A stretch of DNA of 64,000 nucleotides from Oikopleura dioica (taxonomy: Eukaryota > Animalia > Chordata), in the NCBI GenBank assembly GCA_907165135.1, contig OU015568.1:9548001-9612000 (forward strand), given 5' to 3'. The translations under genes were made by a program, and so were the position numbers. Under the pieces are notes generated by a model, which worked only from the letters and a program-made list of their open reading frames with translations, searched no databases and was not told where the DNA came from. This document shows, in pieces, positions 3,001-62,200 of the stretch. Position 1 is the stretch's first letter, and every line of letters begins with the position of its first letter.

Positions 3001-6000
3001 AAGTGTGTTTTATTGTACTGCGAAAAAAATCTAGAATCTATGCCCAAAATCTAACAAAATAGGGGGGACTATATTTTGGTAGCTAGGGGCGGGGCGGGGG
3101 TAGATTACACAAGGGCTATTTAATGACGGCCTATATAGCGTTTTTTACGTTTTTTTCCAAAAGTGTGTTTTATTGTACTGCAAAAAAAGTATCTTGACTT
3201 CCAACCGCAAAATACTAGCGGAAGCTAGGAGTAGGATGGGGGTAGATAATGACGGCCCTTATTCTAGGTACTTACGACGTTTGTCAGATAGTTTACATCT
3301 ATGGCAGTAGCTGTGAATTATATGTCATGCTGTGTATCTACTTGCATGAGTAATCTTTTTCATTTCTAACTCATTTCAAACCGTCCGCGCGTTTGCTGAA
3401 GAGGGTTAACACGGGCGCAAGAAGAATGAACATGAAATTGGTTTTGTCGCTGAGAGAGATGGACAAGGAATATAAGAAAGAGTACATTCAGAATGTAACA
3501 TTCTACTCAAGCGGCGACCGGAGCCTGAAAATGGCGGGAATGGTCAAAATTAAGGAAAAACTCAGAGGCAATTCAAGCAACAGTGGCGAGGGAGAAATCG
3601 AGTTGATTTTGAATGCGACGATCACGATCAAAACTGGAAAACTGGAATGCTATCCATTCTTGGAAAGTTGTCCTTGCCAAAAGCGAGACAGCAAGTTAAA
3701 CAGAAGATGTCCAACCAGAAGAGGATGAAAATCGACTGAAGAGGCAAACAACAAAACGATCGAGTTTCGACAGACTCTTTTCTCGGCTTCATTGCTCGGT
3801 AAATTCTGACAGGGAGAAATCCATACGCTTCTTCTGCTGTTTTGCTCAAAGCTCCGATAACTTCTGCAAGGGAGTTTTCAGAAGCACCGATGTTGAGTCT
3901 AGCTTGATTCGCAAACAGAAATTTGACAGGCTTAGTTTTGGAAGCATCCGGATTAGGCACACCAGTTTCGACGTCTTGGGAGGCCTCCCAGGTGGAAACT
4001 CAAAGAAACTCGATCACTTTGCGCTCGAAAGCGAGCGAAAGCGAAATTCGGCGGTGAATTCGACTGACTCTAGCGTTACAACTTTTTTTCTTCCTGCATT
4101 GGACGTCGATTTGAACTACATGTCGCATGGAAGCGGGGAAACTCATCGCCGCGCGAAGCTTTACCCAAACGTCGTAATCGGCTCCATGCCCAAAGAGATG
4201 AGCATTTCATCCTTGTTCCTCGAATATCTCAGTCAAAGTTTTGACATTCTGGACAAGAACGAAGTCAACACTAGCAAGGAGCCGGAAGACACGGATCAAA
4301 TTGATCTACGAAGCGGCGCCGATCACAATTTCGAGCAAAGTTCAGTCCAGTCTTTCCCCGTCGACGTCGTCGTCCACGCCAAAGTAAAGCCCTCGACCGT
4401 GCTGTTCTCTTGTCAACCTAAAGGAAAGGTCGAATGCACGCTCCGAGTACTGCTGACAAACATGGTCTTCTCGTCACCGCCGTCGACCTGACGCGAAAAA
4501 GTCCGGATTGAATTTGGCGATTCAACTGTCTGATTTCGCTCTCCGTGTGAATCATCTTTACGAAAACTCGTCAAAAGGATGTTTCCACTTGAATTTCGAA
4601 GGCATTTTAATCAACATTTTGAGACTGCACGTCTCTGAAAAGCTCCTCACAATTTCTGTTATCTCCGACATTGGCCAGGCAAATATCAACTACGACATGA
4701 GATGTTTGTCGGAAATCCTCGGCTTTCCAAAAGCTTGGTACAATAGATCCATCGCAAGACGCCTTTTCCTCATTGAAAGTAGCCGCGCGAAGCCGACAAA
4801 CGAAGCTGCTCCTGTCCAGCCGAATCATAATAACGAAAAAAAGGAAACTGCTGTTAGAGTTTCCACAGTTCTCCGAGAGTTGCGAGTCGATATGAACATC
4901 GGAAACGTTCTCGGAAAGACGGTTTGGGTGACAGAGCAACTCGCATATCATGGCGCTTTTGACATGAGAAGCAGTAGAAAAAATGACATCAAGACTTTGG
5001 TTTCTCTTGCGAAGACGAAGATCGAGTCGCGATCAGGACTCCTAGGAGGAGTGATTTCGATAAGTGGTTTCAATGGCGCTTGTTTTTGGCGAGAACGAAG
5101 CACTCAAGATTCAGCTCACGAAATGAAGGTAAATCTTTGTCAACTCTTTAGGATTTTGGTTAGGGTTGGAAGAAAGTCAGATTTTACTGATAGGCCCCTT
5201 GATAAGCTTCGAAAAATAACCGTATTCTCTTTAGGTCTCCCTGGATGAAGTTAGCCTGCGATTGGAATACCACTCGACAGTAATTCTACTTTCGAAGCTG
5301 AGCGATGCACAACTGTTCGTCATCGACGAGAGCTTGTTGGACGAGAGTCCTCCACGGGCAAAGGCGAACATCGACATGCGCTGGGGCGAGTCGATCTTCT
5401 TCTTTGCAAGTCGAATTCGAAGAATCTCGTCCAAGGCGGGCGCAAAGTCAAGGACTTCGTCAAGCAACAGATCAACACGGGCAGCGAGGCCTTCCGCAGC
5501 ATGTTCGCTCACAGCTCGAATTACGAAGAGAAACGCCGCGGCCCTGTAGAAAAATCGAACGACGACAAGTACCAGCGCCACTGGCCTCCGATCTTTAATC
5601 GCCACCCAGTTACTTCGTATCATCTCGGCGGCGAGTCTCGCCTCCGCGGTCAGGAACTGTCAATTGTCTGCTTCGACGGGGATTTCCGATCGGACGATCA
5701 CTGGGTCTTCATTTCCGTTCATTTGCTAGATATTTCTCTCTCCAGCGATGTTTACTCCGCGCCAGAAGATGATGCCCAAGATCGTCTCAATATCTTCCTT
5801 TTCCAGGTAATTTTCAATTGCCTGTCTCTTTATTTCATAATTGCCATTTTCATTTTTAGACGTTCATCTTCAACCTTGGTCTTTACATGCCTAGTCTAAA
5901 ACGAAAAATAAATTTTCAGCAGTACACAATATCGCATTTTCACAGTTGAATTGAATGAAAAATAAAATAGCTATTAGAAAGTTAGAAGTGGGGCCTATTA

Positions 6001-54637: not shown

Positions 54638-57207
54638 ATGAGAAAATTCAATCCTGCAAAAAAATACGCTTCAGTATTTTCTGATTCCAGAATGCTTCGG
54701 TCAAATGCACCTTCTGTTTTGAATCGAAAACGAAATGATGAACCGCCGAGTGAAAGTTCTGTCTCCAACAGGACGAAGAAAAGACGAGTTGACTACCGCG
54801 AAATGGACGAAAACGAGGAAAACGAAGGGCTAGATGATGTCGTCAAGGATTATAACGAAGAGTTGAAAAGCGCTGGCGTCTCGGGATTCCACGAAATCAA
54901 GACGAACAAAAGCATCAGGGACGTGCACGAAGAATTCATCAAAAGTTGCCTTTCTCGTCCTTTCAAAATGGTGATCGCCGGCTACTACTTCAGTGGGAAA
55001 CCGTTGGGCGCACGAGCTGGCGGCATTCGAAGGCCACTTTACGACCCTGAAGACCCGCATGCGCTCATTTTCTACGCACCGCCGACTTTGACTGAAACAG
55101 AGAAGCTCAAGGTCGACCTGAGCAAATATCCCGTTCATGTGCTCCTTGACCCATTATTATCACGCGTTCTCAGACCTCATCAACGCGCGGGAGTCAAGTT
55201 TTTGTACGATTGCGTCACTGGAAAAGCCATTGAGGGATTTAATGGGTGCATAATGGCCGATGATATGGGACTTGGAAAGACTCTTCAGGTATGTTTTATT
55301 CAATAATTTTAAATGGACTCCTCTTATTGTGACGGTTATGAGATCTAATCCCAACAAAAACATCGATTGTTTTTCTAGTGCGTCTCATTAATTTGGACTT
55401 TGGTGCGGCAAGGGCCCGACTGCAAACCAATTGCTCCTCTCGCAATCGTTGTTTCCCCCAGTTCGCTTGTCAAAAATTGGCAAAATGAGTTCAAGAAATG
55501 GCTTGGCGAACGCGTCAATACAGTCGCCATCGACGGTGGCGGGAAAAAGGATATCGACAAAAAACTCGAAGCTTTCTGTTCTCAGCAAGTTCTCGGCCGA
55601 GTTCATACGCCAGTCATGTTCATTTCCTACGAGACATTTCGTCTCCACGCCAAAGTGATCAACAAGCGCCCAATCGGGCTGTTAATTTGCGACGAAGGGC
55701 ATCGCCTAAAGAATCCAGAGAGTCAAACTTACCTCGCCCTCGATCAGTTGGACTGCCAGCGTCGCGTTCTTCTCTCCGGAACGCCGATTCAAAATGATTT
55801 GCTCGAGTACTACTCTCTTGTTCACTTTGTGAATAGAAATCTTCTTGGGACTTCTGCTGAGTTTAGAAAACAATACGAAAATCCAATTTTAAAGTCTCGA
55901 GATGCCGATTGCACCGACAAGGAGAAGGAAAAAGGTCAACAGAAGATCAAACAGCTGCTAGAAGTGGTGAATAGATGCATGATAAGAAGAACGAATGATA
56001 TATTGTCGAAATATCTCCCGCCGAAAGTGGAGATGGTCATTACGATTCCTCTCATTGGGGGCCAAAAAGAAAGTTACATCAAATTTGTCAAGGAGAAAAA
56101 GAGGCTTTTAGATACTGAAGGAATAGGGTGGATTTTTTTAGTTTTTTCTATTGGCTGCGACACAGCCGCAAGAGTCATTTTTCCGCACCCTAGACACAGG
56201 AATGCAAGGCCCATCATCGTTACAGGCAATTACTGCGTTGAAAAAGCTCTGTAATCATCCTGCTCTCGTTTACCCACTCATCAATAATCCAGAATACAAA
56301 TTCTTGCAGCCATACTACAAAGATTATGATCCAGCTAAATTCGATCCAACTCTTTCCGGAAAGTTTCTTCTCCTCGATTTGATTTTGGCGGTGACCAAAA
56401 TGCACACTGATGATAAATTCGTCCTCGTTTCGAATTATACCCAGACTTTGGATACTTGTCAAGAGCTTTGTAAGCTGCGAGGATATGGTTATGTAAGGCT
56501 GGATGGAACCATGGCAATAAAAAAGCGTTCCAAGCTAGTTGCTGAGTTTAATTCTCCCGAGAGCAGCGACTACGTGTTCATGCTAAGTTCAAAAGCAGGC
56601 GGTTGCGGGTTGAATCTCATCGGCGCCAATAGATTGATTATGTTTGATCCTGACTGGAACCCGGCAAACGACGATCAAGCGATGGCCCGTGTCTGGCGAG
56701 ATGGTCAGAAAAAGAGATGTTTTATTTATCGACTTGTTGCGGCGGGAACGATTGAAGAGAAAATGCTACAACGACAATTGCATAAAAAGGCTCTATCGGG
56801 AGTCGTTGTTGATGCACAGGTGAGAGATTACTAAGTCGAAGTGACTCCTCTATGTCTTCAGGAAGCGGACGATGCGAGGCGATTCTCTTCGACGGATATG
56901 AAGGAAATCTTCAGCTATAAAGAGACCACATCTTCGATTCACGAGTCTCTCAAATGTAAAAGATGCCAGGGCGGAACAGAACGAAAGCCGCCACCGAAAA
57001 AGGGATCTGGTGATAGTTCCGATTTGGGCACTTGGAGTCATGCAACTCAGCGTAAGAGAAATATTCTTAGACAATGTAAATGACTTTCATTTTCTAATAG
57101 CACGATTCTGTCCAGACTTAGTGCTGAAGAAATCTTGGGAGCGTCAGAAAGAAATCGTTTCTTTTCTATTTCACCAACAGAGCCACGAACAAGTTGTTCA
57201 AAAATAA
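54638..57207 (+). CDS. RAD54L: RAD54 SNF2-family DNA translocase
   Basis: [81 protein letters not shown]. Confidence 0.95.
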
Positions 57208-57380
57208 TATTTTGAAAACCTCTTTTTCTTTTCACTTACATTTTTCTGACTTCACATCATTCCTGCAGAAATAAATTAAAACTTGCCTCAGAATTTCAGA
57301 CCTGAATAATCTTCAAACTATTTTTAGATCCAAGCTAGAATTAGGGGGTTTAAATGGTTACGGCTGTTCCGAAAAGCTAA

Positions 57381-58958
57381 ATGTGGAACTGGACATGGTG
57401 GCCGCTCATTTTCACGATTCTAGGATGCTTTCTTCTCAACATTTTAATTGACAAACAGCATAAATTAGTCACCTCGCTCACACATCTTCAAGAGGCCCTT
57501 TCTCATGTCCATTATGAACAGGCAAAAGTACAATTATACCCCCTCTTTCTTTGCTTCACTTTCTTTTAAGACCTCTTTGGTGCACTTTCACGTGGAAAAG
57601 TCCAACCGCGATCTACGCCGAGCAATGACCCAACAATTCGAGTACATGCGCGATTTGACCATGTCCTCCCGCAGCCGTTTCATTCGTCTCAAAGGTCTTG
57701 CCGAAGAGGTGAACGAAACGAATATCGTCCTCGAGGAGCGGTTGATTGAACTCTTTCAATACCTCGGCGAGGATCTGATCAAAGGAGATATTGAAAGAGT
57801 CAATCGAATTGGCAAGAAAAAGGACGGATTCAATCGGGTTGTTATGGCGGAGCTGCATTCGCATGCGACAAAGCAACGACTTTTACGAAGAGCTGTCAAG
57901 TTGAGAAACACGCAGTACGCCATTCAAGGTAAAACCATAACCAAACCTTTTTTTTCATTCAATTTTCTCTTGTAGATGATCTGACGAATGTGAAGCTCCA
58001 CAACGTGATTGAGCCCCCGCACGACCACGAGGATCATCCACACGAGTGCGGGCTCTTAAATTTCGTCTCGGCTCCTGAGGACTTCGGAAAGTCACTGAAA
58101 CACTACGGCGCATGGTTCGGCGATCCACTTTCTGAGGAAGAGACTGTCTGGACGATGCCCAATTTTTACAAAACGAAAGAGTTTCAAGAGTACGCCTCGT
58201 TATCCGATTTGATTGCTCACCGCAGTTCACGGGCTTACAAGCTCAAATATCCGTGGGCAGGGACCGGACACATCGCTTACAACAACTCCATTTATTTCAA
58301 CAAATTCAACTCTTCCACCATGGTCAAGTACGATCTCAAAACAGACGATTATTTGGAAGCAGATTTGCCAGATGCGCTTTTTGCTAATTTTGGGCCGTAT
58401 CAAGTCAGTGCTTATACTGATTTTGACTTCGCTGCTGATGAAGAGGGATTGTGGGTGATCCATTCGACGCACCAAAATACCCTTGGTAAGTGCGCGGATG
58501 AGCCACGTCTTGAAACTACTACTAGTAGATTCTAAGACAGCCGAAAAATTTGAAATTATCCTTGTTGTCTCCCAATCATGACTGTTTTTCTAGACATTGT
58601 TGTTACCAAGCTTACTCATGACCTGCACATCGTTCAATCTTTCCGAACGAACTGGCGAAAGCAGTGGTCGGGCAACGCGTTTATGGCATGTGGCGTCCTC
58701 TACGTCCTGAAAAAGTACGATCAAAAGAACACGATCATAAACTTCGCGTACGACACCCATTCAAAACAGTATCGCCATTTGCAAATACCCTTCGAAATTC
58801 GTTACGGCGCCATGACTAGTTTGAGCTACAATCACAAAGAGAAACGACTCTACGGCTGGGACAATCAGCACTTGGTTGCCTATGATCTCGAGTTTTTCTC
58901 TTCTACTGCTGTTGATACCTGGATGCACCTCAATCAGCCGGGTGCACTGGACTTGTAG
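57381..58958 (+). CDS. Four-exon protein: N-terminal hydrophobic anchor/signal, helical stalk, LINE-ORF1p-like RRM, olfactomedin domain
   Basis: Exons 57381-57521 (GC donor), 57571-57928, 57976-58485 and 58594-58958 join in frame. OLF motifs are WAGTGHIAYN, DFDFAADEEGLWVI, NAFMACGVLY and LSYNHKEKRLYGWDN. Confidence 0.85.
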
Positions 58959-59295
58959 ATTCTTTAATATTTTCTTGCTTCTTGAATTGTATAGAACTCG
59001 TTTTGTCTTCCTCTTCCATTTTCGATCATTGTATTTATGAAACATTTTCTATATAATCCAAGCTCCAATTTTAGTATATTCAATCCACTTTTACCTGCTC
59101 CATTCGTATATAACTTCTATTTTCTGTTTCGCTCAGTATAAAATTTCTGTAACTAATTCTATAATACGAAGCCCTACGCGCTCCTTGTGGCGATGAGCGC
59201 TAGAAGTCGGCTATCGATATCATTTTTTTCTGTAAAGGATTTCTTATTTAGTAAAATTAAAATTGCAAAAGTATGAGTAATTTTTTTCAGAAATA

Positions 59296-62200
59296 ATGCC
59301 GAGAGCAGGTGCGTCTCGGCCGCATCTCTCGAGCCAGTCTGATGAAGAGGCAAACGGACCGGAGGTTGTTGTCCGTCCATCTCCTGCTAGACCAAGGCGA
59401 TCGAAGAATGATACGCTAAAAATCAGGCCAAGGTCTTTCATGGACGTCGACGAAGGTACAAATAAGCTTTTGAAAAGGCCGTGTTTTCATCCTTTTTAGA
59501 CCCTCTTCCTCGTTTTATTTGGGAGGCTTTCAAAAAGATAGAAGATCCTAATACCCAGAGCGATACTCAGCGAGACATTCTTGTAAATAAATACAAAAGG
59601 TGAGCAATTTTCGAAATCAAGGAAGAGAGCCTCAATTTTCCCTCAATTTTAGCATCAGCCTCGCGAATCGCCAGAAGTTCATCGAATGCGTGCTGCACAA
59701 TCTCAAAATCGTCCTCGCGTTTTTGAGCGAGAACGAAAAAGGAAATAAAAAGGAATCGGATTATTACACAAACTAGCTCTGTCTGTGTCATGAGCTTGGC
59801 CAAATATTTGATTGAAAAAAACCCTATTGTTGTAAAAGGCCACTCGAGCCCAGGGCCGTAGCCCCTACTTTCTGCAAATATTATTCTTAACTTTTGCGAA
59901 TAACAAGAGAAATGGAAAATTATACGAAGGAGCAAATTGTTGGAAGAGGCGCCTATGGAACTGTTTTTCTTTGCAGGCGAAAAGATGGTGGTCCAAACGC
60001 TCAGACATGCATTCTCAAAGAAATTCCAATGGAAACGATGAGCCAGGAAGAACGCGAATCAGCTAGAAATGAAGTAGAAATTCTAAAAGTTCTCAATCAT
60101 CCGAATATCGTGCGCTACATCGATTCGGAGTTCCAGTCCCGCGCCATCGTCATTGTCATGGAATACGTCACTGGCGGAACCTTGTTCGACTTTATTCAAC
60201 GAAGAAAAGACGACTATATCCCAGAAGAAAAAATAATCAGCCTCTTCGTGCAAATCACCGTCGCATTGAGCCACATTCATTCAAAAAATATTCTTCACAG
60301 AGATCTGAAAACGCAAAATTTACTTATTGATAGACACCACCAAGTCGTCAAGATTTCTGACTTTGGCATTTCGAAAGTTTTGAATTCAAAGGTGAACTCT
60401 TTCTTCCCACTTCTTTTATCTAGCTAATACTGTAGTCGAAAGCGCTCACTGTCGTTGGAACACCATGTTACATCTCCCCAGAGGTCTGCGACAAGAGTCC
60501 CTATAATCAAAAGTCCGATATTTGGGCGCTTGGATGCATTTTATACGAGCTGTGCATGCTGAAAAGGGCGTTCGAAGCTGCCTCTCTTCCTGCGCTTGTG
60601 ATGAAGATCATGAGAGCAAACTACGATCCCCGCCACCGATTTACTCAGAAAACCTCCGACGAATCATTTCAAAGTGCCTCTCCTTGGAACCTCATCGTCG
60701 GCCAACGACAAGTCAGCTTCTTTGCGAACCGATTCTTTTCTCATCCATGCTTCCGCTTTACGCGAGCATTGGTGCGTACGTTCCATCTTCCAACAAGCGA
60801 AAAGTAAAGAACAGCAGCGCCCAGTCAAATCCAATCAAATCTCATCTACGTTCGAGTAAGGTGTTTCTCTGGGGCGATGGGCACCTGACCCCAAGAGAGT
60901 TACCAGTGCCGAATGATGTTGGAGTTGTGAACAATGTTCTGATCAGTGGTGGTGTTAGGGTTGGAACGACAGATCAGGTTCTTTGTCAGATTATAATGTT
61001 GAAGTTATTTTCAAAATAAGGACATCGTTCTCGCCTGGGATGCTTCAGTCTCGGCTAACGGCCTGGCTCAATACGAGCCAAGGCGAATCGGCAAGTCCAA
61101 ATTTCGAGATGTGGCAGCGGGTCAAGGGTTTCTCGCCGCCATTACTGATCGAGGAGTTCTCGTCGTAGCAAAGGCACCTGATTTTGACCCTCAAATTGTC
61201 GAGTCATTCCTGGGTATGGACTGTACTCAAGTTGCTGCCGGTCCAAGACATGTTATCGCTCTCACTGCGGAGGGCGAAGTATGGTGTGTTTTCAATGATA
61301 AGCTGACGGACATAACAACAGGTGAGAACAACCGAAAGTGCTTCTTTTGTTAAAGTCGTATAGTCAAGCGATTAAAGCCCGAGCTTTGCCCGCTAAACAA
61401 AAACCAAAATACCCCCGCTCAGAAAATTTTTTGTGGCCCTGGTGCATCCGCCGCTATCACTGAAACGGGCCGATTGTATGTCCGAGGACGGAATGTCGAA
61501 AACCGGCTCATGCTTGACAGGCCTTCTTCGATGGTCAATTCTGCTGACTCTTTTACAGAAGTGAAGCTTGATTTCCCTGTCAAATCGATCACCATTGGCG
61601 AAAATCATTCGGCAGTGATTTCGAATTTCGGAAATCTTTACCTTGTCGGAAGTAACAAGCATGGAGCATTAGGAGATTCGTTTTCCAGTTCCCGTTCAGT
61701 CGTGCTGAGAGAACTAGCTTGCCCGGTTAGCCAAGTTGCCGTGGGAATAGGTACATCACGATCCGTTTTCAAAAATTAGCTTCCAATATAGCGTATACTT
61801 GTGCGCTGTGCCAAGACGGGACAATTTGGACATGGGGTCGGGCGATTCGCGGACAACTCGGGCGCAACCCAGAGCCAGCTGACTCTCCCCGCCGCGTGGA
61901 TATTGACAATGCGATTTCTGTCTCTTCGAGTGACGGAATCACTCTTGTTGCTGTTAAATCATAGTTTTTATCAACTTTCAATAAATGCAATGACCTTCCA
62001 TTTTTTATTGATTTTTTTTATAATCCGACGAGAAGACAAAAAATGAGCACGATCATATTTTGAAATTCTTTGTTCGCCTTTGCATCGAAATCACAGAAGT
62101 TGACATGGATGCGCGAAATGATCTTGAGGACCAAGAGAACGACCCTGAATTGAATGGAGACTCGTACGCCATTGAGATTGTCTTGGAGACGCTTGCTTCA

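Follow-up and report, generated by a model that had tools for sequence, protein, structure and literature searches.

How does a gene for an olfactomedin (OLF) protein come to encode, between its N-terminus and its propeller, a segment that resembles the RNA recognition motif (RRM) of a retrotransposon protein? This question is raised by a four-exon gene of Oikopleura dioica, located at 57381-58958 (+) in a stretch of 64,000 nucleotides of contig OU015568.1 (C1:9548001-9612000 of the 64.3 Mb genome, which is assembled in 19 contigs). This whole stretch is called the window in the following. The original prediction, made from the letters of the window, had proposed that a module of a retroelement was co-opted here into a membrane or secreted protein, and the homology to ORF1p of long interspersed nuclear elements (LINEs), the fusion to OLF and the predicted secretory features agree with this proposal. 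The gene very probably encodes a noelin-like OLF host protein, the stalk of which is a domesticated piece of LINE ORF1p with a structural role, acquired in an old capture and now present in an expanded family. Three elements of this interpretation are established by the results below: the module is homologous to ORF1p, it is fused to OLF and it is conserved across tunicate classes.

Homology of the middle segment to LINE ORF1p

The four-exon gene model was searched exon by exon. Exon 2 alone gave no match to Transposase_22 in Pfam even at E<=10, and a phmmer search of the PDB returned nothing relevant and no ORF1p match. Single-sequence methods are thus too weak for this exon and profiles were required. 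In a phmmer search with exon 2 as the query, 1.84 billion representative sequences yielded 33 matches at E<=1e-3, which were of two kinds: OLF-linked proteins and free-standing coiled-coil proteins of 180-350 residues. The latter share the signature SRRNN-L.I.G..E, IERAHRIGK, RPIIVKF, KLK.T, I.ED.S. Two profiles were used, one of OLF-linked segments only (A2, 13 rows) and one of 15 free-standing ORF1p-like proteins (A3).

The A3 profile matched human LINE-1 ORF1p in the PDB (2ykp, 2.1e-16; 2ldy, 2.3e-10; 2w7a, 3.3e-7). In addition, P0040, a protein in the same 90% cluster as the phmmer match P0020, is encoded 93 nt upstream of a 909-aa ORF2 with the domains Exo_endo_phos and RVT_1. Judged from these sequences, the free-standing relatives of exon 2 are LINE ORF1 proteins.

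With the A2 profile, too, the four best PDB matches were all human LINE-1 ORF1p (2ykp, 4.5e-5; 2yko, 9.9e-5; 2w7a, 3.2e-4; 2ldy, 1.3e-3). Positions 6-114 of the profile align to residues 23-138 of 2ykp, that is, from the last heptads of the coiled coil through the RRM, and the match stops at chain residue 138, short of the C-terminal domain (CTD) of ORF1p. Compared directly by hhalign, A2 and A3 matched with a probability of 99.5% (E 2.8e-23), and when the whole genome was searched with A3, exon 2 was the best place (1.3e-23). A word-index search with the stalk region of a Clavelina homolog (P0008, described below) returned the query alone, which is a limit of the word index.

The fold prediction leads to the same protein. 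The AlphaFold2 (AF2) model of exon 2, computed with the A2 alignment, reached a predicted local distance difference test score (pLDDT) of 87.4. It consists of a helix (residues 2-34), followed by β37-41, α51-64, β74-80, β90-95, α98-113 and the beginning of a final strand; with the DDLT motif of exon 3 included, the β-α-β-β-α-β arrangement of an RRM is complete. The original prediction had suggested a Foldseek search of this segment, and the outcome is clear: the top 11 matches in the PDB were all L1 ORF1p chains (3.5e-6 to 7e-4), and generic RRMs came after them. In VIA-align the best score was obtained for 2w7a (Z 11.4; root mean square deviation 2.9 Å over 87 residues, 21% identity), followed by 2ykq, 2yko, 2ykp and 2ldy with Z 10.5-11.2, and all other RRMs remained at or below 7.3. 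Because of this gap and of the Foldseek ranking, the resemblance is specific to ORF1p and not to RRMs in general. The helix was also aligned in the trimer entries, where residues 1-119 of the model correspond to residues 121-250 of 2yko. In the model, the helix of exon 2 is thus the counterpart of the final coiled-coil heptads of ORF1p and passes directly into the RRM. Profiles, hhalign and fold comparisons therefore agree with the reading of the middle segment as an ORF1p-type RRM.

An ESM Atlas feature search of 57571-57927, which was not used as evidence, gave scores of at most 0.88 and a mixture of clusters, some of arthropod proteins with Baculo_FP_2nd (PF25298) and others of Transposase_22. 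The former hint at a possible relationship between the ORF1p RRM and the second domain of FP25K-like proteins from baculoviruses, which is no more than a lead.

Gene structure, olfactomedin domain and relatives

The OLF domain (PF02191; Pfam cut-off 23.9 bits) is complete and divided between exons 3 and 4, which score 133.3 bits (1.4e-38, profile positions 4-142) and 107.6 bits (9.8e-31, positions 146-246), respectively. The nearest solved OLF domain is that of noelin (1e-28), with latrophilin, myocilin and gliomedin next. Read together with the exon translations, the encoded parts are, in order, a hydrophobic N-terminus, a long helix, the RRM-like domain and the OLF domain, which is the layout that the original prediction had drawn from the letters.

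The same order was found in other tunicates, where the original prediction had suggested looking for it. Exons 2, 3 and 4 are colinear with residues 56-153, 179-337 and 339-439 of a 444-aa protein of Clavelina lepadiformis (P0008, XP_076821899.1), which is named 'noelin-3-like' at NCBI; the identity is 36% for exon 2 and 47-50% for the OLF exons. A metagenomic protein of 530 aa is likewise colinear with exons 2-4, and H2YGC1 of Ciona savignyi is a further member with the same domain order. Within the Oikopleura genome, the paralog L004 (C1:2730942) has the RRM-like segment and OLF inside a single open frame of 271 codons. Since L004 is a single frame and the Clavelina and Ciona proteins share the order, the fusion of the module to OLF does not depend on the predicted splice.

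A genome-wide Pfam search for OLF gave seven loci, five of which carry the module (the window gene, L002, L003, L004 and L009). The two OLF genes of the genome without it lie at C5:788000-796000 (L016) and C4:1548000-1556000 (L017). One of these is latrophilin-like, with a Gal-lectin-like exon, OLF and a long open reading frame (ORF) with membrane segments; the other has a long Thr-rich, mucin-like stalk.

Searched with the ORF1p profile, the genome contains only seven places at E<=1e-3. A hydrophobic N-terminal ORF lies upstream of each of them, and OLF exons follow in five of the seven. These loci showed no reverse transcriptase (RT) ORFs, and they are not adjoined by any of the 150 RVT_1 places listed for the genome. 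Since there is no RT or ORF2 partner and the copies in the genome are few, the module of exon 2 is a derivative of ORF1p rather than the ORF1p of an element. At one of the ORF1p-profile loci, L007 (C2:1164316-1167741, minus strand, 1306-2016), a hydrophobic N-terminal ORF with a coiled coil (1741-2016) is followed by an ORF1p-like RRM (1306-1731), which retains the LINE-like 'VKF' on β3 and has 'QRNVHVTGIPE' as β1. No OLF domain was found downstream; L007 may have been captured separately, or it may be a member whose C-terminal domain is different or missing. At L018 (C5:14399000-14407000, minus strand, about 4020-5024), a hydrophobic N-terminus and a coiled coil are combined with the RRM-like exon 'LFFGLAEE...' (ORF1p profile 1.1e-4), and the genome-wide Pfam search gave no OLF match there.

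Several features of the window protein point to the secretory pathway. Residues 5-23 (19 residues) have a mean Kyte-Doolittle hydrophobicity of 1.92, and a hydrophobic N-terminal segment also opens the paralogs and homologs, with basic N-flanks in several paralogs. The OLF exons contain two Cys, one near the start of OLF in exon 3 and another within the ..ACGVLY motif of exon 4, and both occupy the same motifs as in Clavelina P0008. The window protein and four relatives (P0008, P0004, P0036 and the paralog L009) have a sequon (N-S-S, N-T-S or N-T-T) at one shared place. From the hydrophobic N-terminus, the two Cys and the shared sequon together, everything after the anchor would therefore be in the secretory pathway. 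The protein is predicted to be secreted or membrane-anchored.

The gene structure is given in Table 1; the boundaries were read by eye together with the exon translations. All introns are canonical GT-AG introns with compatible phases. Joining 57928 to 57976 restores ...YAIQ/DDLT in frame, in agreement with the consensus of the family, I.(E/D)D.(S/T), and by this reading intron 2 lies inside the DDLT motif, as the original prediction had noted. The limits which it had given for the RRM segment, 57661-57987, were accurate to within a few bases: SRSRF begins at 57667 and DDLT finishes at 57986.

Table 1. Parts of the gene at 57381-58958, in coordinates of the window
Feature	Position	Strand	Content	Source
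Exon 1	57381-57527	+	49 codons: start codon, hydrophobic signal anchor or signal peptide (residues 5-23), beginning of helical stalk	Translation
Intron 1	57528-57570	+	GT..AG, phase 0; frame carries on into exon 2	Read on sequence
Exon 2	57571-57928	+	119 codons + 1 base	Translation
Exon 2, first part	57571-57672	+	Predicted long helix, residues 1-34 of exon 2	AF2, A2 profile, VIA-align
Exon 2, second part	57673-57928	+	ORF1p-type RRM: β1-α1-β2-β3-α2 and start of β4	AF2, Foldseek, VIA-align, A3 profile
Intron 2	57929-57975	+	GT..AG, phase 1; interrupts strand β4 (AIQ/DDLT)	Read on sequence
Exon 3	57976-58485	+	Phase 1; OLF profile positions 4-142; first conserved Cys, two N-x-S sequons	Pfam
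Intron 3	58486-58593	+	GT..AG, phase 1; OLF profile resumes 142 -> 146 across the intron	Read on sequence, Pfam
Exon 4	58594-58958	+	C-terminal half of OLF propeller; stop TAG 58956-58958	Pfam, translation

The original prediction had also held that no RT lies nearby and that this is a host gene. Indeed, a tblastn search of the window with a LINE ORF2 query gave no match at E<=1, and none of the 150 RVT_1 places listed for the genome falls into C1:9548001-9612000. Because it contains introns, because the window is free of RT and because it is positioned between a RAD54-like gene and another gene, 57381-58958 is a host gene rather than a transposon. An active or decaying LINE at the locus was considered as well; it is ruled out by the introns, the window without RT and the conservation of the segment between classes. 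The neighbourhood is very compact: the C-terminal exons of the RAD54-like SNF2 helicase gene (56151-57207) end 174 bp upstream of the start codon of the OLF gene. Downstream, the next gene starts at 59296, and an ORF for a NEK-type kinase is found at 59894.

RNA reads from four runs labelled as the same species were mapped to 57300-59100 at a likeness of at least 88%. The reads of three runs stack only at 58647-58696, where they have three fixed substitutions (58658 A>C, 58661 G>A, 58688 A>C), with flanks unlike the window on both sides. Owing to these differences and flanks, the pile is explained by cross-mapping from the conserved NWRKQWSGNAF..CGVLY motif of a paralog and does not represent expression of the window gene. 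Four reads of run X6 match from the start codon onward (boundary at 57380), and the 30 bases upstream of it are related but different. This upstream sequence resembles a 5' untranslated region from a diverged allele or lineage more than a spliced leader.

Changes after capture, function and alternatives

In the window protein, strand β4 of the RRM is followed by the OLF domain within about 25 residues; the CTD that follows the RRM in ORF1p is absent and OLF begins instead. Within the module, four positions of exon 2 distinguish the OLF-linked proteins from the LINE group in column counts. Position 41 is K in 13 OLF-linked proteins and variable in the LINE group, and position 78 is N in 13 OLF-linked and H in 14 LINE proteins. 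On strand β3, position 94 is E in 10 OLF-linked rows and K or R in 13 LINE proteins, and the adjacent position 95 is L in 10 OLF-linked rows and F in 11 LINE proteins. The window protein carries N78, E94 and L95. These shared derived states (41, 78, 94, 95) favour one origin for most OLF-linked copies, and most likely the capture happened once, before the split of ascidians and appendicularians.

In ORF1p, the RRM and the CTD must cooperate in nucleic-acid binding, and the coiled coil reaches right up to the RRM (PMC5940361). Because the CTD is gone and the charge on β3 is reversed (K/R to E), we infer that the OLF-linked module has probably given up RNA binding.

OLF proteins generally display their propellers on oligomerising stalks, which are coiled coils in noelin and myocilin and collagen in gliomedin and the colmedins. 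A stalk of the collagen or noelin type was considered for the window protein and is ruled out: exons 1-3, read directly, contain no collagen G-X-Y runs, Pfam scans of the window exons and of the relatives did not find the N-terminal domain of Noelin-1, and A2 matched no noelin chain. Inspection of the stalk by eye revealed no RhxxhE motif.

The most likely scenario is the following. The captured piece would comprise the C-terminal end of the coiled coil of ORF1p and the ORF1p-type RRM, with the OLF propeller taking the place of the ORF1p CTD. The hydrophobic N-terminal segment would direct the remainder of the protein to the secretory pathway, so that it would come to lie in an extracellular or lumenal position. 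There, as an oligomerising stalk and spacer, the module would display several OLF propellers together, three if its assembly is like that of ORF1p; by analogy with ORF1p, the coiled coil and RRM probably do act as such a stalk and form a trimer. After the capture the gene would have multiplied, leading to the at least five OLF-linked copies in the genome.

Some of our results weigh against this interpretation or leave parts of it less firm. No OLF-linked member reaches the gathering score of Transposase_22 (PF02994; 22.4 bits): the window protein gives no match, and the scores for L002 and P0011 remain at 14.4 and 14.6 bits. Of the profile match that the original prediction had anticipated, the part concerning LINE-1 ORF1p was thus obtained, as the top matches of A2, and the part concerning the Pfam family was not. 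This model is narrow, since on the LINE side P0026 scores only 21.3 bits and P0020 is not matched. Because it misses the module, public annotation shows only OLF ('olfactomedin-like', 'noelin-3-like'). Since the A3 proteins were chosen for their resemblance to exon 2, there is some circularity in the scores between A2 and A3 and between A3 and the window, which does not extend to the PDB and fold results. The prediction of a three-copy complex of exon 2 scored 0.02, which is evidence neither way. In the domain tree, 10 of the 11 OLF-linked rows are on one side of a branch with a weak bootstrap support of 62/99, and L009, on a long branch, falls among the LINE proteins. A single OLF-linked clade was not rejected by the approximately unbiased (AU) test (p 0.30), meaning that a single origin is compatible with the data and unproven. 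Finally, the four RNA runs showed no joint across 57928/57976, the junction that the original prediction had wanted to see confirmed. With 2-28 reads per run over 57300-59100 there is almost no coverage, and this does not count as evidence against the junction, with which the phases, the motif and the colinear homologs agree.

Could the gene model itself be wrong, with exon 2 belonging to a small gene of its own or to the decayed remains of a LINE ORF1 that happen to lie upstream of the OLF gene? Besides the missing RNA joint, this possibility can draw on an unspliced ORF at 57505-57975 and on prokaryote-style gene calls on the ENA contigs, which yield a stand-alone product of 103 aa (P0001). 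Yet the introns are of the GT-AG type with matching phases and the junction restores the conserved β4 motif. L004 holds both domains in one frame, exons 2-4 are colinear with full-length proteins from Clavelina and from metagenomic data, and the arrangement is repeated in four paralogs. Moreover, the segment has been conserved between tunicate classes, which would not be expected of a decaying insertion. We regard such an artefact as very improbable. Even less credence is given to the idea that exon 2 resembles ORF1p only as RRMs in general do or by convergence, or that LINEs acquired the module from a host gene. RRM folds are indeed very common, many generic ones reach Z values of about 7 and the Pfam model of ORF1p stays below threshold. 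However, the profiles select only L1 ORF1p among the RRMs of the PDB, about 4 Z units separate ORF1p from every other RRM, and the preceding helix aligns, too. As to the reverse direction, the ORF1p type spans from human L1 to the varied sources of A3, and the OLF fusion was seen only in tunicates and marine samples; transfer from the transposable element to the host is therefore the simpler direction.

The remaining alternative concerns the function of the module and not its origin. Captured at the base of the tunicates, it could still be trimeric and could have kept a nucleic-acid- or polyanion-binding role, so that a membrane-tethered or secreted OLF protein would bind RNA or another polyanion outside the cell via ORF1p-like RRM heads. 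The RRM fold is intact and confidently predicted, R79, G81, R89, E45 and E49 are shared by the OLF-linked and LINE groups with few or no exceptions, and the RRM part of exon 2 has a net charge of +5 over 85 residues. However, among the OLF-linked rows with a residue at this place, 10 have E instead of the K or R of β3, and the conserved residues may be structural. Hence we consider retained binding unlikely. If true, it would be the first case of a retrotransposon RNA-chaperone module in an extracellular or cell-surface protein.

Comparison with known ORF1p and olfactomedin proteins

A structural stalk derived from ORF1p, as we prefer to see the module, can be compared with its source, with other OLF proteins and with known domestications. 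LINE-1 ORF1p (coiled coil, RRM and CTD; 2ykp, 2yko, 2w7a and 2ldy; PF02994) is the best profile and fold match of exon 2. Both have a long helix that runs straight into a non-canonical RRM, and they share the motif series (S)R..-hRhxG-hPE, IER..RhG, R.hhh.., KL+.T and h.(D/E)D.(S/T). In contrast to ORF1p, the tunicate module has no CTD and no ORF2 partner, is not repeated as a transposon and stays below the Pfam cut-off. Its gene has introns, with a secretory or membrane signal before the module and an OLF propeller after it, and H is replaced by N at 78 and K/R-F by E-L at 94-95.

Among OLF proteins, noelin (OLFM1-3) has the closest solved propeller, and the Clavelina homolog bears the name 'noelin-3-like'. 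Its stalk is different: although the coiled coil of noelin is represented in the PDB (5amo), A2 matches no noelin chain there, and the stalk of the tunicate protein is derived from ORF1p. Gliomedin and the colmedins, with a type II anchor, a trimeric collagen stalk and OLF, resemble the suggested layout of anchor, stalk and extracellular OLF, the tunicate trimer being putative. Since the tunicate stalk lacks G-X-Y repeats and is of different origin, the two are analogous in design only.

LINE ORF1p has rarely been domesticated. For a long time L1TD1 was described as the sole case (PMC4161310, PMC11014241), until in 2025 a screen of vertebrate RefSeq proteins described four ORF1p fusion isoforms, Lyosin/MYL4, L1-RFX5, NUP42-L1 and USP4-L1 (PMC12129022). 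In our searches, no literature was found that joins 'olfactomedin' with 'ORF1p' in the relevant sense or with 'Transposase_22', and 'olfactomedin' together with 'Oikopleura' gave only a work on Ciona notochord genes. The domestication described here thus appears to be unreported.

Like L1TD1 and the Lyosin-type fusions, the tunicate genes retain coding sequence for the ORF1p coiled coil and RRM in a host gene, with an in-frame fusion to host exons. The known fusions are all from vertebrates, have known intracellular host partners and mostly use alternative first or last exons. In contrast, the tunicate module is constitutive and internal, is part of an OLF protein predicted for the secretory pathway, is common to ascidians and appendicularians and has grown into a gene family. 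Compared with the known domestications it is therefore new in several respects: it is non-vertebrate, much older and expanded, and it is found in a predicted secreted or membrane-anchored OLF protein. It suggests that the self-assembling coiled-coil/RRM unit of a transposon can be reused as a structural stalk, and it offers a simple experimental system in which to ask what an RNA chaperone keeps and what it loses once it has been moved into the secretory pathway.

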